From: Rebecca billardiae RCC1528
Taxonomy: Eukaryota; Protista; Haptophyta
DNA: 64,000 bases
NCBI GenBank assembly: GCA_965240325.2
Contig: OZ251222.1
Location: 2,914,001-2,978,000, forward strand
Direction: 5' to 3'
The first letter of the stretch is position 1; each line of letters begins with the position of its first letter. Shown here in pieces: positions 32,785-55,932 of the stretch. The translations under genes and the position numbers were made by a program. The notes below the pieces were generated by a model. The model saw only the letters and a list, made by a program, of their open reading frames with translations. It was not told the DNA's origin and did not search any database.

Positions 32785-34849
32785 TCAAATTCGAGTGCTA
32801 TATTCTAGGCAATATATGCCGTGCTTCTTCCGCTTGTGCGCCTGCGCATCCGGCGCGAGCGGCGCGCGGCATCGCGCGCGCCGCAGGCGGGGCGCCGCGC
32901 GCACGCTCAGTCAGCCAGCTCCGCGGCCGCGCTCGCGCGCTGCCAGCCGCCGCGGCCGCGCGCGCCCTGCGCCGCCCCATGGACTACCTTCAGGGCAACT
33001 TCCGACTGGTACTCGTGGTTGGAGGGGCACCCCGGGAAGTCGCACTTGAGCTTCTCAACGCCCCCAACGGGGTGCTTCTGCCGCTTGTGCGCCTGCGCAT
33101 CCGGCGCGAGCGGCGCGCGGCATCGCGCGCGCCGCAGGCGGGGCGCCGCGCGCACGCTCAGTCAGCCAGCTCCGCGGCCGCGCTCGCGCGCTGCCAGCCG
33201 CCGCGGCCGCGCGCGCCCTGCGCCGCCCCATGGACTACCTTCAGGGCATCTTCCGTCTGGTACTCGTGGTTGGAGGGGCACCCCGGGACGTCGCACTTGA
33301 ACGTCTTAACGCCCCCAACGGGGTGCTTCTTCCGCTTGTGCGCCTGCGCATCCGGCGCGAGCGGCGCGCGGCATCGCGCGCGCCGCAGGCGGGGCGCCGC
33401 GCGCACGCTCAGTCAGCCAGCTCCGCGGCCGCGCTCGCGCGCTGCCAGCCGCCGCGGCCGCGCGCGCCCTGCGCCGCCCCATGGACTACCTTCAGGGCAT
33501 CTTCCGACTGGTACTCGTGGTTGGAGGGGCACCCCGGGAAGTCGCACTTGAACGTCTTAACGCCCCCAACGGGGTGCTTCTGCCGCTTGTGCGCCTGCGC
33601 ATCCGGCGCGAGCGGCGCGCGGCATCGCGCGCGCCGCAGGCGGGGCGCCGCGCGCACGCTCAGTCAGCCAGCTCCGCGGCCGCGCTCGCGCGCTGCCAGC
33701 CGCCGCGGCCGCGCGCGCCCTGCGCCGCCCCATGGACTACCTTCAGGGCAACTTCCGACTGGTACTCGTGGTTGGAGGGGCACCCCGGGAAGTCGCACTT
33801 GAGCTTCTCAACGCCCCCAACGGGGTGCTTCTGCCGCTTGTGCGCCTGCGCATCCGGCGCGAGCGGCGCGCGGCATCGCGCGCGCCGCAGGCGGGGCGCC
33901 GCGCGCACGCTCAGTCAGCCAGCTCCGCGGCCGCGCTCGCGCGCTGCCAGCCGCCGCGGCCGCGCGCGCCCTGCGCCGCCCCATGGACTACCTTCAGGGC
34001 AACTTCCGACTGGTACTCGTGGTTGGAGGGGCACCCCGGGAAGTCGCACTTGAGCTTCTCAACGCCCCCAACGGGGTGCTTCTGCCGCTTGTGCGCCTGC
34101 GCATCCGGCGCGAGCGGCGCGCGGCATCGCGCGCGCCGCAGGCGGGGCGCCGCGCGCACGCTCAGTCAGCCAGCTCCGCGGCCGCGCTCGCGCGCTGCCA
34201 GCCGCCGCGGCCGCGCGCGCCCTGCGCCGCCCCATGGACTACCTTCAGGGCATCTTCCGTCTGGTACTCGTGGTTGGAGGGGCACCCCGGGACGTCGCAC
34301 TTGAACGTCTTAACGCCCCCAACGGGGTGCTTCTTCCGCTTGTGCGCCTGCGCATCCGGCGCGAGCGGCGCGCGGCATCGCGCGCGCCGCAGGCGGGGCG
34401 CCGCGCGCACGCTCAGTCAGCCAGCTCCGCGGCCGCGCTCGCGCGCTGCCAGCCGCCGCGGCCGCGCGCGCCCTGCGCCGCCCCATGGACTACCTTCAGG
34501 GCATCTTCCGTCTGGTACTCGTGGTTGGAGGGGCACCCCGGGAAGTCGCACTTGAACGTCTTAACGCCCCCAACGGGGTGCTTCTGCCGCTTGTGCGCCT
34601 GCGCATCCGGCGCGAGCGGCGCGCGGCATCGCGCGCGCCGCAGGCGGGGCGCCGCGCGCACGCTCAGTCAGCCAGCTCCGCGGCCGCGCTCGCGCGCTGC
34701 CAGCCGCCGCGGCCGCGCGCGCCCTGCGCCGCCCCATGGACTACCTTCAGGGCAACTTCCGACTGGTACTCGTGGTTGGAGGGGCACCCCGGGAAGTCGC
34801 ACTTGAGCTTCTCAACGCCCCCAACGGGGTGCTTCTGCCGCTTGTGCGC
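32785..34849 (-). CDS. Tandem C2H2 zinc-finger array gene, one exon-intron unit per finger (5' exon(s) uncertain)
   Basis: Eight 105-nt phase-0 exons (34849-34745, 34598-34494, 34347-34243, 34096-33992, 33845-33741, 33594-33490, 33343-33239, 33092-32988) separated by 146-nt GTAGTC...CTGAC...GCGCAG introns. Terminal exon 32841-32785 reads AHKRKKHGIYCLEYSTRI*. Spliced repeat is KCD[FV]PGCPSNHEYQ[ST]E[VD]ALK|AHKR[QK]KH = C-x4-C-x14-H-x4-H with Y-x5-L-x2-H. Confidence 0.8.
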
Positions 34850-34962
34850 CTGCGCATCCGGCGCGAGCGGCGCGCGGCATCGCGCGCGCCGCAGGCGGGG
34901 CGCCGCGCGCACGCTCAGTCAGCCAGCTCCGCGGCCGCGCTCGCGCGCTGCCAGCCGCCGCG
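32821..34962. repeat. 251-bp tandem repeat, about 8.5 copies
   Basis: ATGGACTACC recurs at 32979, 33230, 33481, 33732, 33983, 34234, 34485 and 34736. Confidence 0.97.
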
Positions 34963-35541
34963 CCATCACGCGCGCCGCACAGGCATGGGGCGCCGATGGT
35001 GACCGTGACTGGTCCCCGCGCGCTCGTTTGCAAGCTGGGTGCACCCGTCGGCGGGCGCGGGGAGGATAGATCGGACGCGAAGGTCCACAGCACCTGCGGC
35101 CAAGCTCGTCCCGTCGTTCTCGTCCCGCGATCATTCACGATGCGCTCAGCCAATGCCACCACCCTATCGGGGACGGCCGACGGCGCGGCCGCAGGCGTGT
35201 CGCGCCGAGAAGCCGAGAGAGGGCCGAATATGCGTTGTTGGACAATGTCGCCGAAGCGGTCCCAACCGGCGGCGTCCGTCGAGGGTTGCCCGGGCCCTGT
35301 GGCGCCCCGTTTCATGGACATCCAGGCACGGCGTCTGTAGCCTGCCCGCCGGCAGCGGCGAGGGCGGTCGTGCGTGCGGCTGTCGGGTGAACCAAGGGTG
35401 GTCGGTGAACAATACGGTAGGGCGCCGGACGCAATACTGCATGGGTTCAAACCCCCAGTTTCCAGGTCTCTCTTCGGAGAGCGTGCGATGAAGGATGGCG
35501 CGGCAACCTGCCACCGTGAGCCTTACGCACGTTAAAACAAA

Positions 35542-36030
35542 GGGAAAACCCCGGAAGTCCGACGAGGACCGACCGAGCAACCAGAACTCCGACAAACCTC
35601 CGCATCTCAGCACGGCGATTTCCGGACTGGCACCCCCGCCAGTTTTCCGACGGCCAGAAGCTTCGGGAGCGAGCAAATGGCGCCGCTCGCCCGCAACGCG
35701 GAAGATACCGCTCGCGGCGAACCGGCGCGAACGCCCGCCTTGTATTCGGGCGGAGTACCCTAATGAGCGGGGGTGGGTACTTTCGTATTGCGCGCAGCCT
35801 GACGCCCACCCGCGACGAAACGACGCCGTCGACTCCTCCCGCCCGGACCGCCGCCGGAACGTTGCTCGTCAATTAGTTAGAGAAATGCGACGCCGGGGGG
35901 CGCGCCGCAAAACTTGCTCCCGAGCTCGCCACGAGGGACGATCGATGCCTCGCACGACGTTAAGGGGGTACGCCTGCCACGCGCGCGGGCGTCGTGCGCG
36001 CGCCGCGTGGTCGCGCGCGGCGCATCGCGC
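35542..36030 (+). repeat. MULE left TIR
   Basis: Reverse complement of 52841-53329 except 3 mismatches in the first 9 bp, a 13-nt divergent patch (35939-35951) and a few single differences seen by eye. Confidence 0.95.
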
Positions 36031-39000
36031 GCGCGTGTGTCTTCGTTCGCGCGCGCGGCGTGCGCTCGCGCATGTCGTCACGCCGTGCGTTCTGCGTCGT
36101 TGCGCGGCGTCGTGCCCGTGTGCCGCGCGCAGGCCGCCGCCGCCTGCGGGGACGACTCCGACTGCGACGAGCTTCGCGAACGGGGCTGCTGTGGACGTGG
36201 TGTACGAGCAGGGTGCACCGGCAGTCCGTGCTGTGGTCGCGGCGCTTGGGGTCGGCGCACACGGGCGAGTGCAGACGTACGTCCTCCGGGCTGCCGAGGG
36301 AGTGTCTGCTCATGCGTGGGCTGCGGTCCCTGGCGACACCGTCGGTGCGTCCGCGGATGGAACAGTCGAGGGCGCAGGCTCGTTGAAGAGGGTGCCAGCG
36401 GCGCACGTGCGTGCGCCGCCCGCCGGCGAGCAGTGCGCCGAGCAGGGGCAGGGCGCCGAGCAGGGCGCCGAGCAGGGCGCCCTGCTCGGCGCCCTGCTCG
36501 GCGCCGAGCCGGGCGCCGAGCAGGGCAAGCAGGCCGCCGAGCAGGGCGCCGAGCCGGGCGCCGAGCCGGGCGCCGAGCAGGGCGCCGAGCAGGGCGCCCA
36601 GCCGGGCGCCGGGCAGGGCGCCGGGCAGGGCAAGCAGGCCGCCGAGCAGGGCGCCGAGCCGGGCGCCGAGCAGGGCGCCGAGCAGGGCAAGCAGGGCGCC
36701 CAGCCGGGCGCCGGGCCGGGCGCCGAGCCGGGCGCCGAGCAGGGCAAGCAGGCCGCCGAGCAGGGCGCCGAGCCGGGCGCCGAGCAGGGCGCCGAGCAGG
36801 GCGCCCAGCCGGGCGCCGGGCAGGGCGCCGGGCCGGGCGCCGGGCCGGGCGCCGAGCAGGGCAAGCAGGGCGCCGAGCAGGGCGCCGAGCAGGGCGCCGA
36901 GCAGGGCGCCGAGCAGGGCGCCCAGCCGGGCGCCGGGCATGGCAAGCAGGCCGCCGAGCAGGGCACCGAGCCGGGCGCCGAGCAGGGCGCCGAGCAGGGC
37001 GCCCAGCCGGGCGCCGAGCAGGGCGCCGAGCAGGGCGCCGACGGCCGGCCGGCCCGCCACGGCAGCACGCGCGTGGGCGGCGGCAGCTACGCCGCCCAGG
37101 GCATCCAGCAGGAGGCTGCGGGGCAGCGCGGCGCGCAGGGGGCGGCTCACCACAACGGGCGCGGCGGCGTGCGGACGCGGGCCATGCGCCGCCAGCCGCC
37201 ACGTGCGCCACCCGCCGAAGCGCTGCCCGGCGTCACCTCGGCGCCGACGGCGCCGCCGTCGGCGCCGACGGCGGTCGCAGGCGTCACGGCGGCGCCGGCG
37301 GCGCCGCCTGCGGCCGCCGGCGGCCCCGCGACAAGCGACGAACGCGCCGAGCCGCCACGCGCACCCGTCGCAACGCTGGCGCCGGCGCCGGCGCCGCCGC
37401 CGGCGCCGACGGCGGTCGCCGGCGTCACGGCGGCGCCGGCGGCGCCGCCTTCGGCCGCCGGCGGCCCCGCGACAAGCGACGAACGCGCCGAGCCGCCACG
37501 CGCACCCGTCGAAACGCTGGCGGGTGCCACCGGCGTCACCGCGGCGGCGCCGGCGCCGCCGCCTGCGGCCGCCGGCGGCCCCGCGACGCGCGCCGAACGC
37601 GCCGAGCCGCCACGCGCACCCGCCGAGGCGCCGGCGGCTGCCACCGGCGTCACCGCGGCGGCGCCGGCGCCGCCGGCGCCGGCTGCGGCCGCCGACGGCC
37701 CCGCGGGCGTCAACTCAGATGACTCCGGTGGTGCTGCCTCGGGCGAGGTGGCACGGGCGGCGACGGCGTCGACCGCGACGCGCGCCGAACGCGCCGAGCC
37801 GCCACGCGCACCCGCCGAGGCGCCGGCGGCTGCCACCGGCGTCACCGCGGCGGCGCCGGCGCCGCCGGCGCCGGCTGCGGCCGCCGACGGCCCCGCGGGC
37901 GTCAACTCAGATGACTCCGGTGGTGCTGCCTCGGGCGAGGTGGCACGGGCGGCGACGGCGTCGATGGGTGGAGCGGCGGCTGGCGCAGCGGGGTCGCACT
38001 CCCATGCACCACAGCAGGCGCCCGCCGCCGCGCAACCCGGCGGTGGCGGCCACGCGGACGACGGCGGCGGCGTCTACGGCAGCGGCGACGGCGGCTCACG
38101 CGAGCTGTTCGCGATGAGCGATGTCTTGCAGCACGTGGATCATTTCTTCAGCGGCATCTTCGGGAAACGCCGGAGGTTCGGCGGAGACACGCCCGCCGCG
38201 CCGGCGCAGGCGCACGCGCACGTGCTGGTGCGCCCCAGCGCGGTGGCGGATGCGGACGCGCGGACGACGAAGCACGGGCCGCAACCGAACAACGGCCGAT
38301 TGGTGCCGGCCATCCTCAGGTTCAACCGCGCGTTCGCGTCACGGCATCTCGGCGGCGGCGGCGGCACGGTCCGCGTGGTGAACGTGGTGTGCGATGCCAC
38401 GAACAACAAGCACTTCGGCGTGCTCACGGATGCCGACGCTGTGCGCGAGCTGTGCGCCTCGGGCGCCTTGCACACGCGCAGCGAGGTGGACGATGCGGTG
38501 CGCGAGTTCTACGCCGGCGCCGCCGCGAGCGTCGGCGGCGGCTCTGTCTCTGAGCTCGCCCTGCGCGCAGCAGGCGAGCACTTCGGTGTGCACGGCCCGT
38601 TGCCCTACGTCCTCGACGCGGACGTGCGAGTCGCCTTAGCGGACGCTGAGGCCGACGACGATGGCGTCGCAGGCGGCGACGCGCCCTGGGTTCACCGGGC
38701 GCTTGCGTTGCCCTCGATGCGGCGCTCGGGACAGGCGGTGTTCGGCCTCCCCGCCGTGGTTGCACAGGCGCCCTCCTGGTGCGCGCTTGTGCCCACGCCG
38801 CTGCGGGCGCCCGCTGAGCAGGGGACGTCGCCTTTGCTGCACGCCGCCGTGGCCGTGGTGGACTACCGGTCCGTGGACACCGACGACACCGACGAGTCGG
38901 AGCCCGTCGTCGGCGCGCACGCGTACGCCATCCGCTTCGAGGAGGGCTGGCGCCTCCTCACCTTCGCCACGCGGCCGCCCAGTGGTGCGGCGGGCGCGAT

Positions 39001-41665
39001 GACGGCTGCGACGTGCACGGACCTCACGGTCGGAGCCTTCGCCGCCGCCGTCAGCCGGCGTGAGGTTGCTGCGTGCGAGCTGCAGTCAGCGCCGCGGGCC
39101 ATGGCGCCCCCCGTCCAGCACGCCGCCCCCGCGCTCCACGACCCGCCGCCCAGCCCGGACGAGACGGACGCGTTGCCGCCCCGCCCGCGCCGGGACGTGG
39201 TCCCGACGTCCACGGACGTGCTCATGGGCGCCTCCGCGGTGTGCAGCGCGCTCGGCATCGGGCCATGCCATTGGGCGCCCGATGGCGACCCGCCCGGGCT
39301 CATGACGAACGCCGCGGCCATCGCGGAGGCGGCGCTCACGTACGTGCAGTCGAACTACGACGTGATTGGGGGCACGGCGGCGTCGGCGGACCTGCTGCAC
39401 ACGCTCCACCAGATCATGGTCGCCGGCCGCCCGCAGCGCTCGTTTGACAGGCCTCTCCCCCGGCCGGGCGGTGGGACGCGCGTGCGCGTCGCAGGCGTCG
39501 TCGGCGAGCTGCCCGTCCATGAACAAGAGCTGATGCTCGCCTCGAAGCACACGTGCGTCGCGGCGGCCATCGCGTGCGCCTCGGCGCTCGTGCTGCGCGT
39601 CAAGGCGGCACACCTGCGATACGACGCCCTCGCCGACGTCAGCGTGGGCGATGGTGCGTCCTTCGAGGCGGCGGACTACCTCACCAAGGTGCGCATCGTC
39701 AGCGCACGGCTCGTCGCGCCCGAGCGGAAGAAGCGGCTCACCTTCGAGCTCCTCGCCGTCTCCGAGGATAACGCCGGTGCTTACGACCGCGTGCTCAACG
39801 CCGACACGAGCTCGCGGGCACTCCACCGGGACGAGGTGCTCGAGTTCACCTACGTGCCTTCGAAGACGCGCTCGTGGAAGTCGACGGAGGCGCTGTCAAC
39901 GCACAGCCGCGCGGCGGCCGGCGACGACGCCGACGCCGGCAACTTCGGCACGCTGTTCTTCGTCCCGCACATGCGCGACCCCGTGAAGGCAGCCGCCCTG
40001 GCGCGCCCGCCGCCTGCCGGGACGCCACCTGCCGCGCCGCCCGTGGGTGCGATTGTGGACTTTCGCCCCTTGTGCATCAGCGTGTGGGCTGACATCGTCC
40101 CGTTCTGCCAGGATCGGCTCTGGACGCACCCGGCGGACCCAGTCACCGGCAAAAGCAGCGGCGTGGACGCGCCGAAGATGTACGCCGCCGCGCTCCACAG
40201 GCGCGCGCCCTCGCTGGCGCGGCACGTACAGGCGGCGCCAGCGCGCAAGCGTCGCCTGAACGAACGCGGCGCCGACGCGGGCGGCGCGGGCGGCGCCGCC
40301 GGTGGGCGTGTGGTGGCGCGCCGGCCGGCCGGCGACCCGGGCCGCGTCGCCGTCACACGGCCATCCGCCGTCGCGCGCGCACCCGGGCCACCCGAACAGG
40401 CGACGCGCATGTGCACCGAGCTCGCTGCGGCCCACGCGGCCCACGCCCAGCTCGCTGAGATGGTGCACGGCATCCCCAACGCAATGGCACAAGCGATCGG
40501 ACAACTCGCTGCGAACGACGCCAAGCGCCAGAAGGAGTACGAGGCCTGGCGCGCGGCGGACGACGAGCGGCGCCGGCTGGAGCGCGCGGCGGACGAGGCC
40601 TGGCGCCAGCAGGAGCGCGCGGAGGCGGCGCGCCGACGCGACGAGGATCGCGCGGCCGCAATGAAACGTGACGAGATCGCGAGCGCGATGGTGGCGTCTA
40701 TGCAGGCGTTGACGCAGTTCATGATGGACCGCAGCGCAGGTGGCGCACAGCCCGGCCCGCACGCGTCGGCGCACGCGGCGTGCGTCCAGCTGCCAACAGG
40801 CGAAGCACCGCACGGCGCGCACGCCCCGGCTGCGGGCCCGTCGGTGAGCGCTGCGTCCGCTGCGCCCACGTCGCGCGCACCCACGGCACGGCGTGGCGCG
40901 CCGCCGCCGGTCGCATTCGGCCAGCGCGCGCGGCGCCGAGTGCCGCCCCCTGACTCGCGTGTGCCCGCCAGGCCGCTGCACTGTCGCTCCGTGCGCCGGC
41001 CGCGCAGGCCGACGAAGCCCCCGCGGGCCAGCCCCCGCCGGCCGCGCAGTAGACGCCGACCCACAAGGGCGCGTCCTGACGTGCCCACGCGCCGCCCACA
41101 GGTGCGCGCACACACCACATCGGGCGGCGCCAGCCGTGCGCACGCCGAGCGGCGTGTACGCGCAGCCCTGGCTCAGTCGCGCCCGACCGCCCCCGTGCGC
41201 GCGCGCGCGTCGCGGTGGCGTGCACAGGCTGCGCGCCACCCGGGGCGGCCACGCGGGTGGCCGCCACCGCTGGCAGCATCTGGCCACGAGCTCGGCACCC
41301 GGGGTGCCGGCGGAGTGGCTCGTCGGGATCGCCGTGGCCTGAGCCCGATTCTCCGAGCACACGGCCACAGGCACCCCCCCGGCCAGCGCCTCTGCGCCAC
41401 TCGCAGTGACGGCGCCACAAGGGCCTACGGCGGGGCCCGCCGAGAAGGTCTTAGCGCAGGTCTTAGCGGGATGCAAGCAGCGCCACGCGCGACAACACTG
41501 ATACACGCCGCCGGGGGCCCACACTGTGCCGGCCCGTGCTATGTCGTCGTCAGCTCGGACGCAGGCCGGCCGGCCGGTGCCGAGTCGGCGCCTGTCGTTC
41601 TGTTAGCTGGCACCTGGCGTGCTCAGGCGGCGTGGTGCGCACTCAACGTACTCCTGCAAGGGTGA
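35945..41665 (+). CDS. MULE second gene (mudrB-position), large orphan protein
   Basis: Uninterrupted ORF. Candidate ATG at 35945 with an in-frame intron 35968-36132. Possible Tudor/SH3-like N-terminus, [QP]GAE repeats, A/P-rich repeats, a ~700-aa globular-looking middle and a coiled coil. The 3' part after about 40850 probably needs further splicing. Confidence 0.7.
36436..37040 (+). repeat. 12-bp coding minisatellite (GCCGAGCAGGGC; [11 protein letters not shown])
   Basis: Direct observation. Confidence 0.95.
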
Positions 41666-44600
41666 TGTAGCTCGCATGAAGTGCGCCAGACGCCCCTCGT
41701 TGTTGTCGCGCGCCGAACGCGCCTCCAGGGGCGCCGTCGCCGACACCACCGCGCCGAAGTGGCAACGGCCGTCGTACACCACGGCCATCCACGTCGTGCC
41801 CAACTGCGTGACGTCCAGACGCTGCAAGGCGCGCCGCGTGCGCTCGTCACGCAGGCGCAGGTGCGCATGCGTGCTCACTGCGACGCTGCCCTTGCGCCCG
41901 CCGTCGTCAGTCCGCCGCCAGCGAAGGCCCGGCCGCGTCTGCACGGGGTAGAACCAGACGTTGTCGGTGAACGCGCGCCACGCCGCCTCCTCCGGCGTAG
42001 CCCCGCCGCGCAGCTCAAGGACCACCAGCGGCAGGCCCGTGGCGCGCGCCGTCGCGACGTGCGAGCCCCACGCCGACCACGCACCAGCGCGCGCCGCATG
42101 CGCGCCAGCGCCGTCGCCCGTGTACCGGGCGCCGCGCGCGTACGCGCGCGCCGCTGCTCCCAGCGTCCGCACGCCTCCAGTATGTCGCAGTGGCAGTGGC
42201 AGCACCTCCTGCCAGTCCTCGTCCTGCACTTCGAGTCCTTGGCCGGTGCGGGCCCGGGGGATGGATGCTGGCTTGACGCCAAGCATGCCGAGCGCGCTTG
42301 CCGCCGACGCCGTGGCCGACGCCGTGCCGAGCGTCTCGCCCGGTCCGTGCTCGTCCTCCCACGACGCGATGTACGAGCACACGCCGTCGCGCAGCGTCTG
42401 CGCGCGCGCGTTGGCGGCGGGCAGGTCGGCCCGCACGCCACGCGTGTCGTGCGCGAGCCACGCGTGAAAGTAGCAGTCGCCATCGCCGGGAACGTCCTGC
42501 ACGCTCGTGCCGCCGCCGAAGAGCTCGCGGATGGCCGCGGCGACGTTGCCGTCGCCATCCACGCCGCCGGGTGCTCCGGTCTGTGCACCAGCCCGCGCCT
42601 CGGGCGGCAACGCCGGCGGCAGGGGCAGCACGGGGAAGCCCAGGCGCTCGAGCAGGACCGCGGCGTCGTCCACCGGCGCGTGCACGTGTGCGGCGGCCGC
42701 CGGAGCCACCGCAGCCGGCGCAGCCCCGTGCCCGGCGGGCGCCGGCGCCGCCGCACCCGCGTCCACGGTGGCGTCCGTCGCCGCCGCGGCGCGCGGCGCG
42801 GCTGCGCCGCGTGGCGCGGCATCACCCGCCGTCACGTCAGCGCGGCATCGCTCCGCCGTCACGTCAGCGGCGGTCTCGCCCAAGGCCAGGCGCAGCCCCA
42901 AGCCCACGTCGCACCGCCATGCCCCGTCGGAGCCGTCGAGAGGGACCACCTCGGTGCCGAACGCGCTCGGGTCCAGCGCATCCACCTCGCACCCGCGCCG
43001 CCTGGACGCCAGCCTCACGTGCGCGTCCGCAGCCGGCTGGAACGCACTCCAGCGCGACGCCGGCAACACCCCGTGCGCGCGCGGGGTGGCCTGCGGCGCA
43101 ACCACTGCGTAGAACTGCCGGCGAGGACACACGTTGCGCACGATGGCCACCCAGCCGGTGCCCATCGCCCCGACGTCGAGCGTGCGCAGGACGCGTGCGT
43201 GCGTCTCGCGTCCCAGGCTCAGGCGCGCTTCGCACAGCGGACGTGCGTCCGCGTGCGCGGCGCCTGCGTCGGGCGTGTCGGCGCGCCGGCGCTTCGCGCC
43301 GGCGCCCCCGCGAGCGCGTGGCGCCGCCGGCGCCGGCGGCACGCGCACTGCCGTCGGAGGATACCACCGCACGTGCTCACGCATGGCGACGCCGTGCACG
43401 TCGCGAGCTCGGCGTGCGTAGGCCATGTCGAAGACGAGGAGGTGCACGCCGGCGGCGCGAGCGACTGCCGCGTACCACTCAGGGCCATCGCACGTGTTGC
43501 CCGGGCTGCTGACGTACCCGTCGCACGTGTACTCCGCCGCTCGCACTGCCAGCGTCACTGCGTCGTCCAGATCGCGCACGCCCTGGCCGGGGGTGTGCCA
43601 CGACGACGAGTCGTCGGGGGCCACCATGCGCAGAGCCCGCAAACGCGCCTGCCCAGCTTCGTCGCCACCTGCGCTCTCCGGGGGAAGTGCGCGCACGTCA
43701 GCGCCGCACAAGCCGATGAAGCGCGCCTGCGCTCGCAGGTCCTCTGCCGACTCGGCCGGGCCCAGCGCGCCACCCCAGCCGACGGAGTGCTCGGTGGGCG
43801 TGGCATGCGCGTGCGCGGCCAGCCACGACGCGGCCGCCGCGCGCAGGCGCCGCGCGCAGCACGCCCACCACAGGGCCTCAAGCGTGCTGGGCGGACGCGC
43901 CCGCGCGTGCGCGTGCGCGAGCACCGCGTGCAGCACGTCGTCACCGTCGGCTGGCACGGGCAACGGCTGTGCGGCGCCCGCGCCCCAGAGGTCGTCGAGC
44001 ACTGCCTGGGCGCAGCAGAGCCGTAATCGGGCGAATTCGGCGTCGTGGTCGTCTGCGCCGGCGGCGGCGTCGGCGGCGTGGAACAGGCGCACCGGCGCGT
44101 GGCGGTCATCGCCCGCGGCGCGCGCTCCAGCGTCGCGCACCGGCAGACCAGTGCGCGCCAAGTGGGCGACCGCGTCGTCCGCGGTGGCGACGGCTGTGTC
44201 GTCCGCGGCACCAGACGTGCCACGCGCCGTCCCCAGCAGGTCGGCGCCTGCGCGCGTTGGGCCCGGCGTCGGCACCGACCGCGCCGCCGACGATGGCCCC
44301 GCCGTGGACGCGCGGGCGCCCGCCGCCTGGCGCGAAGCCGGCGGCAGGCGCCCATCCGCGGCCGCACCGCCCGCGTCGTCGGCGGCGGCCGCAGTCCGAG
44401 GGCGCTTGGGCGCGCACGGCGCAGACGCGGCCCCCGCGCCCGCGCGGGAGGTGCCAGCCGCGGCGCCCGCCTGGCCTGCGGCGCCTGCGCCCGCGCCGCC
44501 GCCGCCAGCCAGGACGTCCGCCAGGCCCGCCGCCGCCGCCGCGACGTCGTGTGCGCCTGCGTGCGCCCACACGTGGGAGGCCGCGTTCGGAGCGGCGCCG

Positions 44601-47600
44601 CCCGAGCCCCTCGCGCCGCCACTGCCCTCGGCGGGCACGGCGGGCGACGCGTGCGCGCGCGCCAGCTCGGCGGGGGCGGCGGCGGCGCGCGCAAACTGTG
44701 CCAGCACCTTGCCCGTCGTCGCGCTGGACGCGCCGAATGCGTCACCGGCCGTCTCGCTGAGCGTGGGCCACGGTGCTGACAGGCCGCGACTGCACATGAA
44801 CATGGCTGCCCTGCCCCGACCGATGCCAGGTATGCGCTGCAACGCCGCGAGCACTGCGGCGCTGTCGTCAGCGAGGCGCGCGTACGCCGACTCGGACTCC
44901 GCCGCCTCCGCCGGTGGCTCTGCCGCGCCCGCGCGCGCCCGAGGGACTCGCGCACCCGGTGGCGGTGGCGCGTGGGCGCCGGGCCACGGGGGGCGGAAGG
45001 GATGCTCAGTCGCCGCCAGCGGTACTGTGTCGCCCGTGGCCGGCAGCGGCTCCGCGGCGTGCGCGCGCGCGCGCGCGGCGGGCGTCGTGCCGGCGTCCGC
45101 GCCACTGCGCGGGCCCGTCGTGCCCTCAGGCGGTGCGGCCGGCCGCTGCGTGGCGGCGTTTGGCATCGGTGCCGTCGCGAAGCCCATGCGTACGCCGGTG
45201 CCGCCAAGTGCCTGCGAGGCGATCGCGCGCGCGCAGTGCCGGCGCGGGCCGCCGCGCGCGCCCGCGCCCGCCGCGGCGGCGCCGTCGCGCGTCTGGGCGG
45301 CCGCCGGCTGCGCGCGCCCGGGCGCGGGCGCCGCCGCGCCGCGGCCCCCGCGGCCGCCTGCGCGGCCCCCGCGCGCGCCTGCGGTGCGCGCGGGGTCGCC
45401 GCGCGCGGCCCCACCGCCGTGCTGTCCGCGCATACGGTGGTATGGCACGTCCTCCGGCCTCGCGCCGCGCGGCCCGTCGGGCGCCGCCGCCTCGCCCGCC
45501 GCGGCTGCGCGCGCTTCGCGCAGGCGCTTCCACGCCCCCGCGACGAGCAGGAAGTAGCAGCACGTGCACATGTACAGCCCGCTGTCCAGCGCGCCGAGGT
45601 GCCACACATACTTGCACTGCGCGGGCGAGTGGATGAAGCAGGCGCAGCCCTGGCACGCCAGTCGGGGGTCGATCGGCGGCGAGTCCGCCGGCCACGCCGC
45701 GCTGAGGTCCGCGGCCTCGGGGTCGAAACACGCGCAGCAGCGCAGTTGCGCGGCGGCGGTCGTGCCGGCCGTGTACGTGGCAAAGTGGCGACGTCGCTGG
45801 TTCGCAACCACACCCTCGCGGAGCGGGCCGGCCACGCGCACGAGCACGTTAGTGTCGTCGAGCACGTGCGTGTGCGCGATGCCGTACAGGTGCTCCGGCA
45901 GCCCCTCGAGCACACGCGCGAGCTCGTCGCGGTGCGCTTCGCGCACGCGCCGGGCGAAGTCGCCGTCCGGGGCTTGCTCCCTCAAGGGGCGCACGTACGA
46001 CGCCGCGGATTTGCCCAACTGCACGCGCGGCGCGCGCGCGCGCGGTGCGCGCGGGTGGCGCGCCCCGGCGCGGCCCTCCCAGAACGCCAGCCGTCGCGCC
46101 GAGGACGCGGGCCTGCCCACGCGCGCGGGCACCGCTGGCATGGCCACGTACTTTTCGAGCAGGGCGCGCTTGGCGAGAGCGGGCAGCAGCAGAGCCGCAA
46201 TGGCGTCCTCCAGGCGCTGGGGCGGTGTGATGACGTCGAGCTTGGTGATGGCCACGACGCGCCCGAGCGTGTCCACCCGGGTGTCGTTGGCGTCGCGCTC
46301 GACCCGAAGGCCCACCTGCGCGAACCACGTCTCGCAGCGCAGGTCCTGGGGCAAGCACGTGCCCATGGCACGGCCGACGGAGGTCGCCACGCGGCAGAAG
46401 TGCATGCACGGCAGGCGCTTGCGGCGCAGCAACGCGCAGCACCGGAACTCGTCGAGGTACACGTGGCGCGGCGCCGAGCCGTCCGTGGTGTTGAGCATGC
46501 GCAGGGCACCTGCGTGCGGCCCGTCGAGGACACGGTGCACTTCCACCTGAGAGAGCGTGCGCGCCGTGCTCACCTGCTGGCGCACGTATTCCAGGTGCCG
46601 TGGCGGCAACCCGTGCACCTCATCATCGGCGTCGGGCTTCAGGGCGTGGCGCACGGCGACGCTGCGGTGCGTCGCGTAGAGGCGAAAGAGGTTGTCGTGC
46701 AGGTCGAGCAGCATCCACACCGGGCCCTGCGCCTTGCGCACCGGCAGCAGCCAGTGCATGAAGGACTCCGCCGGCGCGGACGTCACGTAGCCGCGCAGGG
46801 ACACCGGCGCGAAGCACGGGAAGAGCTCCTCGCGGGGGATGACGTCGAGGATGCGCTTGGCCGACTCTGGCATCTCCACCCAGGCGGCCTCCCACACCTC
46901 CTCGGTCAACGCGTCCACGCACGCGTCGAACACGCGCAGGATGGTGGGCACCTCGTTCGCCGAGTGTGCGTAGCCCGTGATGAAGGTCTGGCGCTTGTGG
47001 AACGTGCACAGGAAGAGGTGCCTGCGCGGGCACAGCAGCTTCCACGCGCCGCGCAGGCCCTTCTGGCCGTCCGAGATGGTGACGCCGTTGGGGTCGTCCC
47101 ACACAGCCGCCCCGCCGAGGTGCTGCATGAGGTATCCGACGTGCGCGCACCACGAGTCCAGGCACTCCACGTCGACGATGTACGACACGCACAAGACGAA
47201 CAGCTGCCGGTTGGCGTTCACGGCCAGCGTGACGAAGAGCATGCCTGCGTCGCGCGCGTGCGTGCGCGCGGGCAGGTCAGACGGGCGGGCGCTGAGGCGG
47301 CACGGACGCACGCGGCGTCGCGAGGGCGTGCCCGGGTGCGGCGGGCGCGCGCACCCGCGCGCTTCGCGCCACCGCTGGCGGGGCGGTGCAGGAAGCACGC
47401 GTCGCTGAACGCGGCCGTGTTGCCCTTCGCGTGAAAGTGCTCGCGGTAAAGCGCCTTGGCCTGCTTGGGCACGTAGTGGAAGCCACCCACTGCCTTCTTG
47501 CCGCGCACGTCAGCCAGCGCCTTCTGCACCTCCGCCGCGTCGGGGTTGAAGGCCGCGCGCTGCGCGCCCGCCGGCAGCCCCTGCTGCACCTCGTCGTGCA

Positions 47601-50600
47601 CGCGGCCGAACATGGCCAGCAGCGCGTCCTCGACCGAGTTCTCGTGGAAGATGATGGGCGCGACCTCGTTGCCCTCCTGCGACAGCGACGCGCACACGGC
47701 CACGAGGTCGCGCGACATGGCCGTGTCGTCCCCGTAGATCTCGGCGCGCGCTTCTTTGTGCGCTCGCGCGATGAGCGATTCACCCATGGGGAGCTCTGCG
47801 TCCAGCTGGCGCGCGACCTCTCGTGCTTGCTGCGGGCCGTAGCACAGCTGCGCGTGCGTGGTCCCGCGCCGGGCCAAGCGCGCCTTCCAGTCCTCGACGA
47901 TCGCCCGCCCGAGCTCGTGTTGGGAGTACGGCGTCGTGCGCACGCCCGGCTGGTTGGTCGGGCGCGGCAGCGAGCCGATGGGGTGTTCCTCGGACCCCTT
48001 GCCCATGCGCAGGTTGCGGCACATGGAGCCGTGCGCGACCGAGCGTTGCACGGCCCACGGCGGCGCGCCAAACGTGTCCACGTACTTCGACGGGCCCACC
48101 ACCACCACGGACGGGCACCCGGGCGTGGGGCATCCGATCGTCAGCTTGGCGCGGTCGACGCGCCGCGTCGGCGGCATGGCCCCCCGGTGCAGCGCGCACT
48201 CCGAGGCGTGCGTGAGCGCGTCGGCGAGGCGCGGGTACACCTGGCGCACCATCGGGGGCTCGAGCAGGGTGGCGTCCGCCTTCACCTGGGAGTACGGGCG
48301 CGGCGCCCGCAAGCCCATTTTCCTCCACAGTGCCAGGGGCCGGAGCTCGAGGCGGTGCGCTGCCGCCGACGTGCTCGCCGAGGTGCTCGACGGCGCGGAG
48401 TAGCGGAAGTACCCGGCGTCACCGCCGTGGTGCAGCGACTCCGGCGCAACAAGCCGGGCGCCGGCCTGGCCGGCGCGGGGCTCGGCGGGACCGGTGGAGG
48501 GCGGCTGCGCGCGAGCGACGATGGGTGGACACGGCATGAGGGCAGCCAGCGGGTCGCGCGCGCGAGCGGCGTCGCTGTCGGCGGACTCGTCCGCCTGCAG
48601 TGCCGCCTGCGCCGCGCGCGCGCGGGCGTCCGCGCAGTCGTCGTCCGCGATGCCCTCCTCCCAGTCGCGCACGTCGATGGCGGCACTGGCGGGATCGGCG
48701 TCCGTGACGAGCGGCTCGCCGCGGGCGTCGGACTCGCCGACGCGCATCGTCGGCCAGTCCGCGCTCAGGGCGAACAGCGGCGCGTTGCCGCGGGCGGCCG
48801 CCGTCGTGTGCGTCCTATGGCCCACGGACGCGTCGACGAGGGGCACTCCACCGCGCGCCCATGCGGGCGCCGACTTCTCCGTCGCCAACGCGTCGGCAAG
48901 GTGGCCACCGAGGTGGGCACGCTGGCCGGCGTGCAGGGCCAGGGCGAGGTCCCCGCCGGACAAGAGGCCACCTGCGTGCGGCAGCGCAGGGAGGGCCCTC
49001 AGCCGCGCGTCGTCGTCGTCATTGCCGCCGTCGCCACCGGAGGCGCCGCGCGGCTGCGGCGGCGCGCGCGAGGCGCAGCCGGGCGGCTGCGCGATCACCG
49101 CGCGCGCGCTGCTGCTGTCGAGGGGCGGCCCCGCCGGGTGGAGTGGCGGGCGCGCCGTCGCGGCGCACACAGCAGCGCCGGGCACCGTCACCGCGACGCA
49201 GGGCACGGCGTCGCCCGCAGCGCAGGGTGCGCCCGGCGCTGGCGTTGCCACGCGAGCGGGCGAAGAGTGCCCATCGCCAGGCCGCGGCGACGCGGGCTCG
49301 TGCGCGCCCGGCGCGTCCGAGCTCGAGCTTTGGCGGGCGCCGGTGTGCCGCAGCGGGGCGGACGCTGCGTCGGGGCGACGCACGGCCGTGGGCGCGCGCG
49401 GCCCGACAGCCGGGTCGTCAACGCCATCGGCGCGTGGGGGCCGCGCGCCCTCGTCAAAGGGGGCGCCCACGTGCGCGCCCGTGCCGTGCGCGGCCGCGGC
49501 GGTGGGCGCGCGCCCACCGCCGTCGGCGTGAGGCGCGGGGTGGCCGCCCGCAAGCCCCACGACGTGGGGCACGGCAGGCGCCGCTGCGCGCTCATGTGCG
49601 AGCTGCGCGCCGTCGGCAGCGCACACGGGCAGCGCCAGCTGCAGCGCCGACTGCGCCCAGGCCCGCTGCTCGTGGTCCGACGGCGCCTGCTGGCCGTGCG
49701 CCGCGGTCGGCAGGTCGACCACCAGGCGGGAGACGTACTCGTGGTGCGCAGGCGAGCCGAGCCGGAAGCGGGCGTCAGCGCCAGCGCGCGTGGGCTCAGC
49801 CCCCCAGCGCAGCCTGGTCTCAAACGAGTGCTGGAGCCCGCGCTCGAGGGCGGGCACGAGCCGATACGGCGTGGGAGGCGGGTCGGAGCGCGCCGCGCAC
49901 GGCGTGGCGGCGGGGCGAGGCGCGCTCGGCGGCGGCGTGAACGAAGCGCGGAATGTGTCCGCGAGGCCCCGCCCCCCGAATGAGAACACAGCCTTCAGGA
50001 CGAGCGCGTCCGCCGCACCCTGACGCGTAGGCCTCTTGCGCGAGGACGACGGCACGGACCCCGAGGACGCGGCGCGCGCACTGGGGGCCGAGCGGTGATG
50101 CCACATGGCGGGGAAGATGTGCACTGCACCTGCGCTTTCCTGCAGGGCAACGTCGCCGTGCAGCGGCACGGCGTCGGCGCGCGCACCGGGGGGGCGCGCG
50201 CCGACCGTCTGCAGCGGGAAGGGATTGGTGGGCACACTTTGCGGCAAGTGCAAGAGGACCACTGCCGTCCACAGATGGTCCTCGTCGGTCGTGCCGTCGA
50301 CGTGCCACCCGTACGTCGTGACGTCGCCGTCGTCGCACGTGCCGCGGCCCCCGTCGGGCGGACGCATCGGCCGCCCGAAGACATGCCAGGCCGTGAGGTC
50401 GAGCGCGTCGAGGCCGCGGACACCGTCAGAGGCGTCGCCGCGGAACAACGAGCTCACGACGCCCTTCAGCGCCGCCACCACGCGCTCAAAGGCGCGGCAC
50501 CCCAGCACCGAGCGCGCAGAGGAGCCGTGGTCGCCCACCCCCCAGCGCCGCTGCGCGGCCGCCTCGCCGCCCGCGTCCGCGGACTGGTACGCGTGCACCG

Positions 50601-52509
50601 TGCGCAGGAGGCCGCCACCCTCATCCAGCAAGGGCATGGACGCATCGCCGTCCCCGCCGAGGCCTGCGTGCTGCAGCACGTACTCGCGCAACGGGCCAAC
50701 CAGCACGCCCATGTCCATGTCCAAACGCTGCGGTGCCGCAGCGGCGGCACCAAACGCGGCCTGCAGCGCGCGCCCAACCGCGGCGTTATGCGCGAGCATG
50801 TCGTCGAGGCTGGGCGCGGGCGCCGCCGCAGGCGTCGGCGCCAGCGCGTCGCCCAGCGGCGGCTCGCCTGCAGGCGGCAGCGCGCGCGGCACCACCACGG
50901 CGGAGGCAGGGCGCATCGCGCCCGACGCCGCGCTCGTCACCTCGTCGCGCCACGGCGCAGCGGCGCCCACGACAGCGTGCGCACCGCACAGCGTCAGCAC
51001 CAGCGTCACTGGCGGCTGCGAGACGGCCGCGCCGGCCACGAGGGCCTGCGCGAAGGTGGCGTCGAGCAAGGGGTGCAGACGCGCGCCCTCGCCGACGTGC
51101 ACCAGCGCGGGCGCGAGCGGGATGACCACTGCCCACACGGTGCGCTCGGCGATGGTGGAGGCGGCCCGCAGCAACGGCCGCGCCAGCCACCCTTCGCGCA
51201 GCGAGCCGTCCTCGCACGCGGCCACAAAGGCCGCAAGACCGGCGTGGCCGTCGGCGACCACGGCAGCACGCAGCCTGACGGCGGCTGCGCGCACGGCGGC
51301 GTCACGTCCAGCGGCGGCGCCGGACGTGGCAGCGCGCGGCGCTCCATCTGCCGCCACCCCTTCGCCGGCCCCCACGACGGCCTGCGAGACGGCGCCGAGC
51401 CACGCCAAGCGGGCGCTCTCGAGTTCCGCACGCAGCTGCTGGTCGCGCCAGCGTGCCTGCTCAGCCGACGCGGGAACGAACGCGCGCGGCTGCGCCGGCA
51501 CGGGCGCGCAGAGCGCGCGTACGGCAGCGTACGCCTGCGTGCGCAGCTCCGCCGCTCGCGCACGCAGCGCGTCCGCGCAGAGGCTGCTGCGGCCTGCTGG
51601 CCACGACGCCACGCGCTCGAAGGCGACGAACAGAGGCTCGGACTGGCCAGCGTCCGCGCCGAAGACGGCGCGCGCGTAGTACATCACCGCCTCGGACGGG
51701 CATGACAGCGGCGGGCACGGGGGGGGCGCGCCCGTCCAAGCGCCCGACGGCGCCGCCGCCGCCGCCGTCGTCGCCGGGAGCACGTCGTCGACGCCTCCGC
51801 CAGTCCCAGCACCTGGGCGGGCATCCGGACGGGGGGCGCACAACGCCGCCAGAGCCAGCTTCGTCCGGAACGGAGCGGCGGCCCAGGCCGCACGCACTGC
51901 CCACGCGCATGCGCCCTGCGCGTGCTCAGCGGCGCGTGCGTGCTGCCCTGGGGTCGGCGCCGAGGACGACGGCGACAGCGACTCCGCGCCACCCGAGCGG
52001 CGCGCGTGGGACGTGCCTGCGGGCGGCGGCGCCGGTTTCCCTCCGAGCGCCGCTGCGGACGCCGTCAGTCGCGCCGTCTCCGCGAAACTGCCCTCCTCCG
52101 CCAGAGCCCCGTCGGCGGAAGCACCACAGGCAGCGCGCACGGCGATCTGCGCGACGGCCCTGAACCAAAGGGCCGCCGCGCACACGCGCGCCACCGAGTC
52201 CGCGCGCTCACGCAGCGCGTCCGGGTGCGAAGCCAACAACTCCGCACACTCCACCACAGTGAGCAGCGCGTCGGCGCCGCTGCCACCCCATACGCGCGGC
52301 ACTGTGACCTGCGCGGCGGCGGCGCCAAGGCCCACGTCGGTGCTGTGGACCACGCCGAGGGTGCACAGCACCAGACCAAAGGTGAACGTCCACGGGGCTG
52401 CTGCCGAGGAGAACTGCAGCGTGCACAACGCGTCGTCAGCCGCTGCGATCACCGCGTCCACGAGCAGCAGGTCGTCCTGACTGCTGGGGCCGGCGGACAC
52501 ATGCCGCAT
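41603..52509 (-). CDS. ~3,600-aa MULE transposase polyprotein (2OG-Fe(II) oxygenase-like, MuDR/FAR1-type DBD, DDE, SWIM, PHD-like, HhH, pseudo-OTU, OTU)
   Basis: ORFs 47218-52575 and 41603-47398 are joined by a phase-1 intron 47354-47245 (GTGCGC...GCAG), giving FSDACFL...G|MLFVTLAVNANRQLF...TISDGQKGLRGAWKLLCP..HLFLCTFH...TSAPAESF. DBD GCPTPGCP..WAV..HGSMC; SWIM RCC..LPCMH; other motifs are detailed under findings. Start codon uncertain. Confidence 0.88.
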
Positions 52510-52840
52510 GCCCGCCTGCGCGGTACGTGCCAGCACGTGCGGCGGAGAGGCAAACGCAGGCGCGCGCGAGCACACACACGGGGCACATCGTCAGACAGGG
52601 GACGGGGGCGCATGGGAGTGGTGCGGTGTGCGCGCGCGCGGCGGCGCACGCCACCAACATCGCTGCCGACCACACACACCCGCCCCGGCCCACCGCGACC
52701 TCGCACCATTCACGAATCACGAGTGCGACTTGCCTGCTCGTCGCGGCCGGCGACCGTCGACGCCTCAGACCGACTCGGATGCGAGAAGGGGGAACTCCTG
52801 CGAGGGGAGGCCGCAGGGAACAAGAACGGTCGGTGCGTGT

Positions 52841-53329
52841 GCGCGATGCGCCGCGCGCGACCGCGCGGCGCGCGCACGACGCCCGCGCGCGTGGAAGGCG
52901 TACCCCCTTAACGTCGTGCTCACGCCCAGCCCTCCCTCGTGGCGAGCTCGGGAGCAAGTTTTGCGGCGCGCCCCCCGGCGTCGCATTTCTCTAACTAATT
53001 GACGAGCAACGTTCCGGCGGCGGTCCGGGCGGGAGGAGTCGACGGCGTCGTTTCGTCGCGGGTGGGCGTCAGGCTGCGCGCAATACGAAAGTACCCACCC
53101 CCGCTCATTAGGGTACTCCGCCCGAATACAAGGCGGGCGTTCGCGCCGGTTCGCCGCGAGCGGTATCTTCCGCGTTGCGGGCGAGCGGCGCCATTTGCTC
53201 GCTCCCGAAGCTTCTGGCCGTCGGAAAACTGGCGGGGGTGCCAGTCCGGAAATCGCCGTGCTGAGATGCGGAGGTTTGTCGGAGTTCTGGTTGCTCGGTC
53301 GGTCCTCGTCGGACTTCCGGAGGATTCCC
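52841..53329 (-). repeat. MULE right TIR
   Basis: Inverted copy of 35542-36030. Confidence 0.95.
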
Positions 53330-53347
53330 TAAAACAAATAAACTGTA

Positions 53348-53414
53348 GGGAAGTGACGTCTGTGGGGTCACTTCCGCTGTGCGCACGAAAGTGAGGCCCC
53401 AGAGGTCACTTCCC
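53348..53414. other. Nested palindrome (double hairpin/cruciform)
   Basis: GGGAAGTGAC-GTCTGTGGG-GTCACTTCC ... GAAAGTGAGGCCCCAGAGGTCACTTCCC. The two halves are inverted copies of each other and each half is itself self-complementary. Confidence 0.75.
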
Positions 53415-54904
53415 TTCCCCCTCTTATTGGGGCATTTCTTCTAAGTAGCAAAGTCCGGACGCCCAGCTGGCGACCGGTGGCCACGATGGCGGCCACGCCC
53501 GCCACGTGGTGTGGGCGGGACCTTGCAAGATCAATCAAGGCGGATACAAGTGGCGGAGACTTTGATCATCGGCTAGCCCCCGTGCAGTGTGCTCTTAGCT
53601 ACACACTTATCAGAGCTGGCTCGTCTCCTCCCTCAAGACCCGCTGCTCTGTCTAGATTCTGGGTGAGCATTGCAGCATTCGCCTGATCCTCATGCGAGGG
53701 ACGACGACAACTGGCGAGCCGCTAGGCTGCTCAACGGTGACGAAGGCAGCAGTCGAGCTGCCAAGCAAAGGTCGACGCAGTGTACCTGTGCATGCGATGC
53801 GCGGGGCAGCGCGCGCCATCGTATCGCCCGTCGCCGTCGGCCACGCAGCTGCTACCGGCCAGCTGACATGATGACGCAGGGCCAGCTGAGCAGCTGCTGT
53901 GCCGAGGATCACATGGGTGCCAAGGGCTGGCAGGTGGCGTCATCACGGCGTATGCTGCGTGTGCTGCTCTCACTTACCGTGGTTGACCGGCTGCTCTGCC
54001 AGCGCGTGCCCGTGGCTGTTGCTGGGCAGGCAACGGCGCTCCTCCAGCCCGAGACAGGCTGCGCGCGTGCTGGTGAGCAGCCAACCTGCAGCTGATGTAC
54101 AGGCGGCCGCAAGCTGGCATGGCCGAGGGCACGCGGTGGCATGGTGTCTATATTAACCCACGAGCTGCCGGCCGCGCTCGCACACGCCGTGCAATCGCCT
54201 GCCGCTGCCGGGTTTGGGCACACTCGCGGGGGGGGGGCGCTCACCAGGCATTGGTCACACGCCCTCGGCGCCTCTGCCTAGCTAGCACTTGCAGACACAC
54301 CGTGCGGCAGCCCAGCGGCCACCATCCGCAGCGGTGGCTGCGAACTGGCCGAAGCTACGGGCGCGCGGCTGCATACTCTCCTTATTGGAACGTGCGCTGT
54401 CAAGTGTGATCGAGCTGACGGCGGACACGCCGGTCGGTGCTGTGTTCTTGCGCTCTCGGGGCCGGTGGTCATCAGGCGGTGGATACGCAGCGCGCCGCCA
54501 CGGTGCGCCAGCGCCGCAGCCGACGACTGCGGCTGCGACCAGTGTCGCGCAGCGGCGGCTGAGGGCTGTCGCGGCGGATGCGGCGACGGCGGCGGCGGCG
54601 GCGTGGTCTGGGCATGGGCTGCCGACGCCACGCGCGCACGCTGAGCGCGTGCAGCTCAGGCACAGCGACTTCGCGCGCTTATGACCGGCTGTCACCAGGC
54701 GGTGGACACGCGGCGCGCCGCCACTGTGCGCCGGCGCGGCCGCAACCGACTGCGGCCGCCGACTGCGGCCGCGACCAGCGTCGCGCAGCGGCGGCTGAGG
54801 GCTGTCGGGGCGGAGCGCGCGTGGCTGCGCGGCGGCGTAGTCTGGGCATGGGCTGCCGACGCTGCGTGCGCACAGGCGTGCGCACCCAGACCGGCGACGC
54901 TGAT

Positions 54905-55735
54905 CGACGCGCCCATCGCGCTGGAGCCGCTGTCATCCGACGCTGCTGTGCCCGCGCCCAGCAGCGCTCGACTCCGCGCCCAGTGCGGCGGCAGCAGCAG
55001 GGATGGTGCCACGGCGGGCGGCGGGCGCTGATGCAGCTGACGGCTCGGCTGTGCGCGCCCGAGGGGCCTGGGCGACGGGCGCGCCGAGCGCGGTGACGCC
55101 TCTCGCCTCGCCCGTCGCGCTGGAGCCGCTGCCATCCGACGCTGCTGCGCCCGCGCCCAGCTTGGGCAGCAGCGACTGCGCTCGACTCCGCGCCGCGCGC
55201 GGCGGCAGCAGCAGGGATGGTGCCACGGCGGGCGGCGGCGGTCGACGGAGCTGCCAGCTCGGCGGTGCGCGCCCGAGGGGCCTGGGCGCTGGACGCACCG
55301 AGCGCGGTGCCGCCTCTCGCCTCGCCCATCGCGCTGGAGCCGCTGCCATTCGACGCTGCTGCGCCCGCGCCCAGCTTGGGCAGCAGCGGCTGCGCTCGAC
55401 TCCGCGCCGCGTGCGGCGGCAGCAGCAGGGATGGTGCCACGGCGGGCGACGGGCGCTGATGCAGCTGGCGGCTCGGCGGTGCGCGCCCGAGGGGCCTGGG
55501 CGACGGGCGCGCCGAGCGCGGTGACGCCTCTCGCCTCGCCCATCGCGCTGGAGCCGCTGTCATCCGACGCTGCTGTGCCCGCGCCCAGCTTGGGCAGCAG
55601 CAGCAGCGCTCGACTCCGCGCCGCGTGCGGCGGCAGCAGCAGGGATGGTGCCACGGCGGGCGACGGGCGCTGATGCAGCTGGCGGCTCGGCGGTGCGCGC
55701 CCGAGGGGCCTGGGCGACGGACGCGCCGAGGGCGA
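54905..55735. repeat. ~214-bp GC-rich tandem repeat, about 4 copies
   Basis: GGATGGTGCCACGGCGGGCG recurs with ATG at 55003, 55217, 55431 and about 55644. A more degenerate ~225-bp duplication precedes it (54460-54870). Confidence 0.85.
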
Positions 55736-55846: not shown

Positions 55847-55864
55847 ATATATATACATACATAC

Positions 55865-55926
<62 letters not shown>

Positions 55927-55932
55927 ATACAC

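Follow-up and report, generated by a model that had tools for sequence, protein, structure and literature searches.

A 17.8-kb Mutator-like element with candidate protease and oxygenase cargo in the haptophyte Rebecca billardiae

The maize transposon MuDR is about 5 kb long. MuDR and the Mutator-like elements (MULEs) with two open reading frames (ORFs), such as those of the Mutyl and PMD-antisense groups, hold long terminal inverted repeats (TIRs) that start with G, are flanked by a 9-bp target-site duplication (TSD), and encode a DDE transposase with a SWIM finger, while another gene runs in the opposite orientation (PMC6446971, PMC5499845). Here we describe an element with these features, in which a SWIM-like motif stands in the place of the SWIM finger, in the haptophyte Rebecca billardiae RCC1528. 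It occupies positions 35542-53329 of a 64-kb stretch of contig OZ251222.1 (positions 2,914,001 to 2,978,000 of the forward strand; hereafter, the window, to which all coordinates refer). The element, of 17,788 bp and bounded by TIRs and 9-bp TSDs, is about 3.5 times longer than MuDR and, unlike it, holds its transposase core in the middle of a chain of 3,595 amino acids (protein A, the product of gene A). In contrast to the two-ORF MULEs, its second gene (gene B) encodes a protein of about 1,592 amino acids that matches neither PMD nor any other Pfam family.

MULEs that carry additional domains are also known. TIRs of up to 640 bp and second ORFs in antisense have been reported, together with an OTU domain on MuDR-6_HM from Hydra, a SET domain on MuDR from Phytophthora, and PHD fingers on Rehavkus (PMC6446971). 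In grapevine, the MULE Mutavine-1 reaches 17.7 kb, and Ulp1 has been found in either orientation on MULEs (PMC2528002). VANC and the Ulp1-bearing KIU represent the known MULE cases of anti-silencing (PMC13317346). Dioxygenases of the TET/JBP type have been described on fungal KDZ, hAT, Harbinger, EnSpm, Plavaka, IS3EU, and Helitron elements, with no MULE among the carriers (PMC12730594).

The element of R. billardiae resembles the KAONASHI and VANDAL elements with Ulp1, the ULP-MULEs of grapevine, and MuDR-6_HM in that a MULE carries a protease for ubiquitin-like modifiers, sometimes in the orientation of the transposase (PMC2528002, PMC13317346); it differs from all of them in the pair of OTU copies, one dead and one predicted to be live, fused at the C-terminus. 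The TIRs, which are short or missing in VANDAL and KAONASHI, are long here, and no similarity to VANC or Ulp1 was detected in the element, gene B being devoid of a Pfam match or of a relative among 1.84 billion proteins. As in the Phytophthora MULEs with SET and the PHD-bearing Rehavkus, a chromatin-type domain appears to be present, although there is no SET domain here and the PHD-like finger is a motif only (PMC6446971, PMC12730594). With the fungal TET/JBP transposons it shares a probable 2-oxoglutarate- and Fe(II)-dependent (2OG-Fe(II)) dioxygenase on a DNA transposon, which in this case is 2OG-FeII_Oxy_3-like and lies in frame with the transposase.

Earlier MULEs provide examples of a comparable size, of the layout, and of protease cargo. 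A first reading of the letters of this DNA (the sequence-only reading) had described the element as several-fold larger than canonical and as the best candidate for an undescribed system. A size outside the known MULEs is not supported, given Mutavine-1, and neither is an undescribed system, as MULEs carrying proteases and chromatin enzymes have been published (PMC6446971, PMC13317346, PMC2528002). By the features tested, the element belongs to the Mutator superfamily and is not a new kind of element. In the literature searched, with most subscription journals and Repbase lying outside it, we found no oxygenase of the prolyl 4-hydroxylase (P4H) type in frame with a MULE transposase, no dead-plus-live OTU pair, and no transposase core buried in a chain of 3,600 residues, absences that constitute weak evidence.

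Element ends and transposase core

The TIRs, located at 35542-36030 (plus strand) and 52841-53329 (minus strand), span 489 bp each and align without gaps, with 473 of the 489 positions identical. The near-identical TIRs and the perfect TSD that the sequence-only reading had reported are therefore both borne out: TAAAACAAA, found at 35533-35541 on the left and at 53330-53338 on the right (9 bp each, with no strand assigned), is present exactly twice in the window when both strands are checked, that is, only at these two flanks. The differences between TIRs comprise three mismatches (nucleotides 6, 7, and 9), a divergent patch of 13 nt (nucleotides 398-410), and two single changes beyond this patch, while the 388 bases from nucleotide 10 to nucleotide 397 are perfectly matched.

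MULEs are recognized by TIRs typically over 100 bp, by a catalytic signature consisting of the DDE triad, a (C/D)xxH motif 15-45 residues past the second Asp, and a Trp before the Glu (PMC5499845), and by TSDs of 8-11 bp (PMC5499845, PMC6446971). TIRs of 489 bp and a 9-bp TSD that is unique in the window fall within these ranges, and the core of protein A exhibits the whole signature of DDE, CxxH, and Trp. This core (46766-47403, minus strand), interrupted by an intron of 128 nt, holds D1706, D1774, C1795/H1798 (21 residues past D1774), and Trp residues, with the Trp in the sequence EEVWEAAW preceding E1875. The best Pfam match of the third exon of gene A is MULE (E = 0.0095, under the curated cut-off). 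A Cys/His cluster located before the first Asp (47959-48261, minus strand) is likely to be a TIR-binding zinc knuckle, judging from its position and motif, and a motif past the core (46331-46528, minus strand) resembles a SWIM zinc finger in which the first CxC is CC. Neither of them has a Pfam match, and both Cys/His clusters lie at the expected places. The whole transposase core covers approximately residues 1430-2010 (about 580 residues), which represents about 16% of the protein A chain. Searches with the core, alone or within its long exon, found no relatives, including in metagenome, viral, and prokaryote contigs and in plasmids. An identity as hAT or KDZ was rejected on the grounds of the 9-bp TSD, the Pfam match to MULE, and the SWIM-like motif past the core. 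Altogether, the element is almost certainly a real MULE, from a very diverged algal lineage of the Mutator superfamily.

These data also support the proposal of the sequence-only reading that this is an intact and young Mutator element with extra domains and a convergent layout similar to that of MuDR. A recent insertion is indicated by the near-perfect TIRs, the perfect TSD, and the lack of disablements, so that the element, as judged from its sequence, is structurally intact and probably young, and it is very likely to have been mobile recently. No similarity was found between the element and the remainder of the window.

Gene models and coding support

Gene A (41603-52709, minus strand) is modeled with three exons (52709-52707, 52515-47373, and 47244-41603) separated by inferred introns of 191 and 128 nt. 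Its first exon is probable and would provide the start codon, an ATG at 52709, from which 3,595 amino acids can be read with no stop; another in-frame ATG exists at 52506. The second intron (47245-47372, minus strand, 128 nt) is of the GT-AG type and falls within the catalytic core, and its excision restores the frame of gene A and sets the first catalytic Asp ahead of the other MULE motifs. Gene B (35945-41052, plus strand) would consist of exons 35945-35967, 36133-40843, and 41008-41052, as deduced from motifs and codon bias, with two GT-AG introns (35968-36132 and 40844-41007, 165 and 164 nt, respectively). The convergent genes are separated by about 550 bp (41053-41602), probably a 3′ non-coding region shared by both.

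The three large exons are stop-free over 1,879, 1,714, and 1,570 codons. As the element has a GC content of 76%, compared with 67-68% in its flanks, long open frames are cheap (one antisense frame exhibits just two stops in 1,714 codons), and for this reason codon bias was tested. When the codon model obtained from one gene was applied to the other in windows of 60 codons, the modeled frame was the best one in 90% of the windows for gene A and in 85% for gene B. A second model, trained on two host genes only, favored the modeled frames in domains and linkers alike and scored the proposed introns as non-coding. Gene A thus offers 10.8 kb in one continuous frame with codon bias throughout; the GC content at third codon positions is 0.88 in both the element and the host. 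The two head-on ORF systems free of disablements that had been noticed in the letters of this DNA are accordingly backed by stop-free frames and codon bias, except for the end of gene B. The plus-strand frame remains open up to 41665, but the host-trained model scores 40844-41662 as non-coding, and hence the stop of gene B is most likely at 41052. Three further candidates were rejected: an end of gene B at 41665, since the last ~800 bp of the open frame look non-coding; a start at 35495, which lies outside the element; and the long antisense and off-frame ORFs, which lack codon bias.

The TIRs seem to take part in the expression of both genes. The same GT donor is found in the two of them (at 35968 in the left one), and in the right TIR it probably opens an intron in the 5′ untranslated region of gene A. 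The ATG at 35945 where gene B starts is the sole ATG that differs between TIRs, being present on the left side only, inside the 13-nt mismatch patch. The shared donor and this patch-specific ATG suggest that each TIR provides a promoter and a first exon, and that the patch has been kept divergent as it holds the start of gene B.

Modules carried by proteins A and B

Long linkers rich in Ala, Gly, Pro, and Arg separate the transposase core of protein A from the rest of the chain. At the C-terminus, an OTU-like cysteine protease (41732-42538, minus strand; residues 3285-3553) keeps Asp3303, Cys3306, and His3544, so that both the Cys loop and the distal His of these enzymes are found at the level of motifs. 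The Cys loop has OTU as its top Pfam match (E = 0.11), and all three matches obtained in PDB fall on it (best E = 0.006); every match of this loop was to an OTU. Ahead of this domain lies a duplicate copy (43088-44005, minus strand; residues 2796-3101), designated here as pseudo-OTU, in which Cys has been replaced by Asp and His by Gln. Both copies align end to end with about 30% identity and a score of 164, compared with a maximum of 76 among shuffles, and the C-terminal half of the pseudo-OTU matches the other copy with an E of 5e-12. This duplication is old and yet still in frame. Enzymes of the OTU family are isopeptidases that act on ubiquitin-like tags, and the intact-looking copy is quite likely to be an active OTU-type protease.

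Two smaller modules lie between the transposase core and the OTU pair: a helix-hairpin-helix (HhH) motif around residue 2520 (44711-44893, minus strand; Pfam HHH, E = 0.038) and a PHD-like C4HC3 zinc finger (45521-45778, minus strand; residues 2218-2278), which is recognized by motif and obtained no profile match. In gene A, the initial 580 residues (52515-50776, minus strand) show coding bias and helical-looking segments, are matchless, and may hold further domains.

Ahead of the transposase core, a segment (49939-50541, minus strand; residues 660-860) probably forms a 2OG-Fe(II) oxygenase similar in type to prolyl hydroxylases, with H739, D741, H808, and K842 as candidate ligands. Its assignment comes from language-model features and from an ordered motif. 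In the ESM Atlas, the features of the segment point to 2OG-FeII_Oxy_3 clusters (score 0.94, 25 of 30 matches, recognition 2703, above threshold), and the ten best families all belong to the P4H-like family or clan. The ordered motif HxD...H plus a basic ligand is found in 49 of 72 phage P4H-like proteins used as controls (family PF13640), at this sole site among 1,012 six-frame windows, and in none of 50,000 shuffles, although the pattern was composed with the query in view, which makes the shuffle test optimistic, and it was the second pattern tried, the initial one having been dropped after matching 0 of the 72 controls. Several other results weigh against this assignment. The profile built from the 72 phage oxygenases gives the segment 0.5 bits, a score equaled by 10 of 2,000 shuffles and third in the window; hhalign assigns it less than 1%; and the gap between His and Lys is 34 residues, compared with about 10 in the phage controls. 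The segment has no Pfam match, sequence searches found no relatives, and its single-sequence model reaches a predicted local distance difference test (pLDDT) of 34. With these data on both sides, we consider it likely that the oxygenase fold is real. An identity as TET/JBP was rejected, the Atlas families being P4H-like and the Tet_JBP profile being absent at E up to 10; no match to TET/JBP, JmjC, or AlkB was obtained in Pfam.

The first domain of gene B, on the plus strand, is a small beta domain (36161-36409) of five strands, possibly an SH3/Tudor-like barrel. The single-sequence model of this domain of 83 residues has a pLDDT of 48.5, and its structural neighbors are mainly Tudor, chromo, and other SH3-like barrels (Z of about 4), while Foldseek returned no significant match for this domain; an SH3-like barrel is a weak lead from modeling, and this lead does not extend to histone reading. 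The domain is followed by in-frame repeats (36427-37964), with a 12-bp unit repeated 53 times and then units of 141, 114, and 192 bp, which form a linker rich in Ala, Pro, and Gly. The globular core (38102-40204) exhibits codon bias, and its 700 residues found no relative among the 1.84 billion protein representatives, in the ESM Atlas, in Pfam, or in PHROGs and NCBIfam. Toward the end, a charged segment (40352-40774) looks like a coiled coil on inspection of its sequence. Searches with the TIR pattern or the proteins in metagenome, viral, and prokaryote contigs found no relatives, and exact look-ups of the ORFs of the element and its flanks yielded no match.

Role of the cargo, surroundings, and meaning

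The picture that we favor, and that we regard as reasonably probable taken as a whole, is that of an autonomous and recently mobile MULE whose cargo acts on proteins and whose gene B is a helper. Each TIR would function as an inward promoter with a first exon, and, in the manner of maize MuDR, genes A and B would be transcribed toward each other. In protein A, the 580 residues at the center would bind the TIRs, and the DDE core would excise and join the element with a 9-bp stagger, for which the cut-and-paste chemistry known from Muta1 serves as a model (PMC5499845). The flanking modules would be kept as cargo whose targets are proteins rather than DNA bases. Most likely, the OTU would strip ubiquitin off the transposase or off chromatin in its vicinity, thereby protecting the former or opening the latter, with its dead copy as a binding module or partner. 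The oxygenase would most likely hydroxylate a protein side chain, and the PHD-like finger and the HhH motif would help to hold the complex on chromatin. Gene B, in the position of mudrB, would be an element-specific helper. We lean slightly toward the view that the cargo serves the transposition or the protection of the element.

Some facts run counter to this picture. No cargo domain reaches the curated Pfam cut-off, the same being true of the MULE match, at the E-values given above for OTU, HhH, and MULE; no homologues were found that could show conservation of the fusion between transposase and cargo; the splice models of both genes are predictions from motifs and codon bias; and the low-depth Logan contigs of one run include none across a junction or an empty site.

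A different proposal is that the cargo is a dedicated anti-silencing kit, in which readers of the PHD-like and Tudor-like kinds would recruit both the OTU and the oxygenase to copies under silencing to erase histone or DNA marks. A single element would then be the counterpart of VANDAL/VANC or of the fungal transposons that carry TET. Reader-like and eraser-like modules do co-occur in the element, and transposon-borne modifiers of silencing have been published (VANC, KIU, Phytophthora SET, and fungal TET/JBP). Nevertheless, PHD and Tudor are weak calls, the relatives of the oxygenase by features are prolyl-hydroxylase-like proteins, with none of the TET/JBP, JmjC, or AlkB matches obtained in Pfam, no arrays of short motifs in the style of VANC were seen in the 3′ non-coding region or in the TIR, and CpG is not depleted in the element (observed/expected ratio of 1.27, as in the flanks). 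The sequence-only reading had spoken of a chromatin and ubiquitin toolkit; extra domains are indeed present, with identities of moderate support (Pfam scores below the cut-off), and the chromatin side of that reading is weakened because the oxygenase is closer to protein hydroxylases than to TET/JBP. We judge the anti-silencing kit unlikely, and equally so its extended version, a self-contained set of protein and chromatin modifiers assembled around the transposase, in which reader modules would target the active OTU, its dead twin, and the hydroxylase to the element's own copies so that silencing is lifted or evaded, with gene B as a sequence-specific guide.

Protein A might also be a polyprotein, cut by its OTU-fold protease to free a transposase of normal size and to release the other modules as separate proteins. 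This would fit a core that accounts for about 16% of the chain and is bordered by long Ala/Gly/Pro/Arg-rich linkers, and in PDB the Cys loop is best matched by the OTU-type domains that viral polyproteins carry. However, the OTU family acts on ubiquitin-like tags, no repeated cleavage motif was identified, and the dead tandem copy is left unexplained, for which reasons we find the polyprotein improbable. Less probable still is that the interior is neutral host DNA, recently captured in the style of Pack-MULEs and open by chance at 76% GC. MULEs do take up host fragments (PMC5499845, PMC13317346), stops are rare in such a composition, and the profile scores are weak, but a continuous frame of 10.8 kb with codon bias in domains and linkers, an old OTU duplication (about 30% identity) that is in frame still, and segments without close relatives, unlike fresh captures of conserved host genes, speak against it. 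Finally, an assembly artefact or a segmental duplication in place of transposition has a negligible chance. The absence of contigs across a junction or an empty site would fit it, but a direct repeat of 9 bp, unique in the window, lies immediately beyond the two TIRs, the Logan contigs (low depth, one run) agree at about 100% with pieces of the interior and with the right TIR, and the host genes nearby match contigs of two independent run assemblies (ERR14847148 and ERR14847151) at 100%. Near 49491 and at 51744-51777, single low-depth contigs diverge from the element into unrelated GC-rich tails, and these may be either chance matches or deleted derivatives.

The insertion site of the MULE is rich in AT and lies about 210 bp upstream of the point where a gene with zinc-finger repeats, on the minus strand, probably starts. 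A plausible first exon of this gene begins near 35322, and at 32821-34962 (minus strand) an array of 8.5 copies of a 251-bp unit corresponds to repeated exon-intron units with a Cys/His finger. On the other side, an imperfect 69-bp hairpin (53347-53415, 80% paired), located 8 bp to the right of the TSD, may be the end of another element, and a tandem array of 3.7 copies of a 214-bp unit with 92% matches is found at 54964-55762. Long TA runs (32596-32688 and 55847-55991), both preceded by CATC, flank the MULE plus 5.4 kb of flank; their inner ends show no convincing inverted repeat, and they may belong to a TA-targeting host element. The host frames in the window include an ankyrin protein (9899-11830, plus strand), a RING plus LRR protein (23671-25443, minus strand), a Kringle protein (26203-29067, minus strand), and a divergent pair formed by a short-chain dehydrogenase (59974-61014, minus strand) and an intronless gene for a BRCT plus GNAT acetyltransferase (61302-62918, plus strand), the latter two being the host genes matched in both run assemblies.

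The element extends the pattern in which DNA transposons recruit enzymes that act on ubiquitin-like tags and on chromatin into a lineage in which hardly any MULEs have been described. It also adds a new item of cargo for the literature searched, a probable prolyl-hydroxylase-type oxygenase whose reading frame is shared with a MULE transposase. An intact family makes it possible to test the role of a transposon-borne OTU/Ulp1, the function of a gene in the position of mudrB, and how an element of 17.8 kb is moved, and algal genetics could make use of the element as a native transposon for large cargo. If the extended anti-silencing proposal were true, this MULE would carry an anti-silencing system separate from those based on VANC and TET, and no earlier one would have used an enzyme of the prolyl-hydroxylase type.

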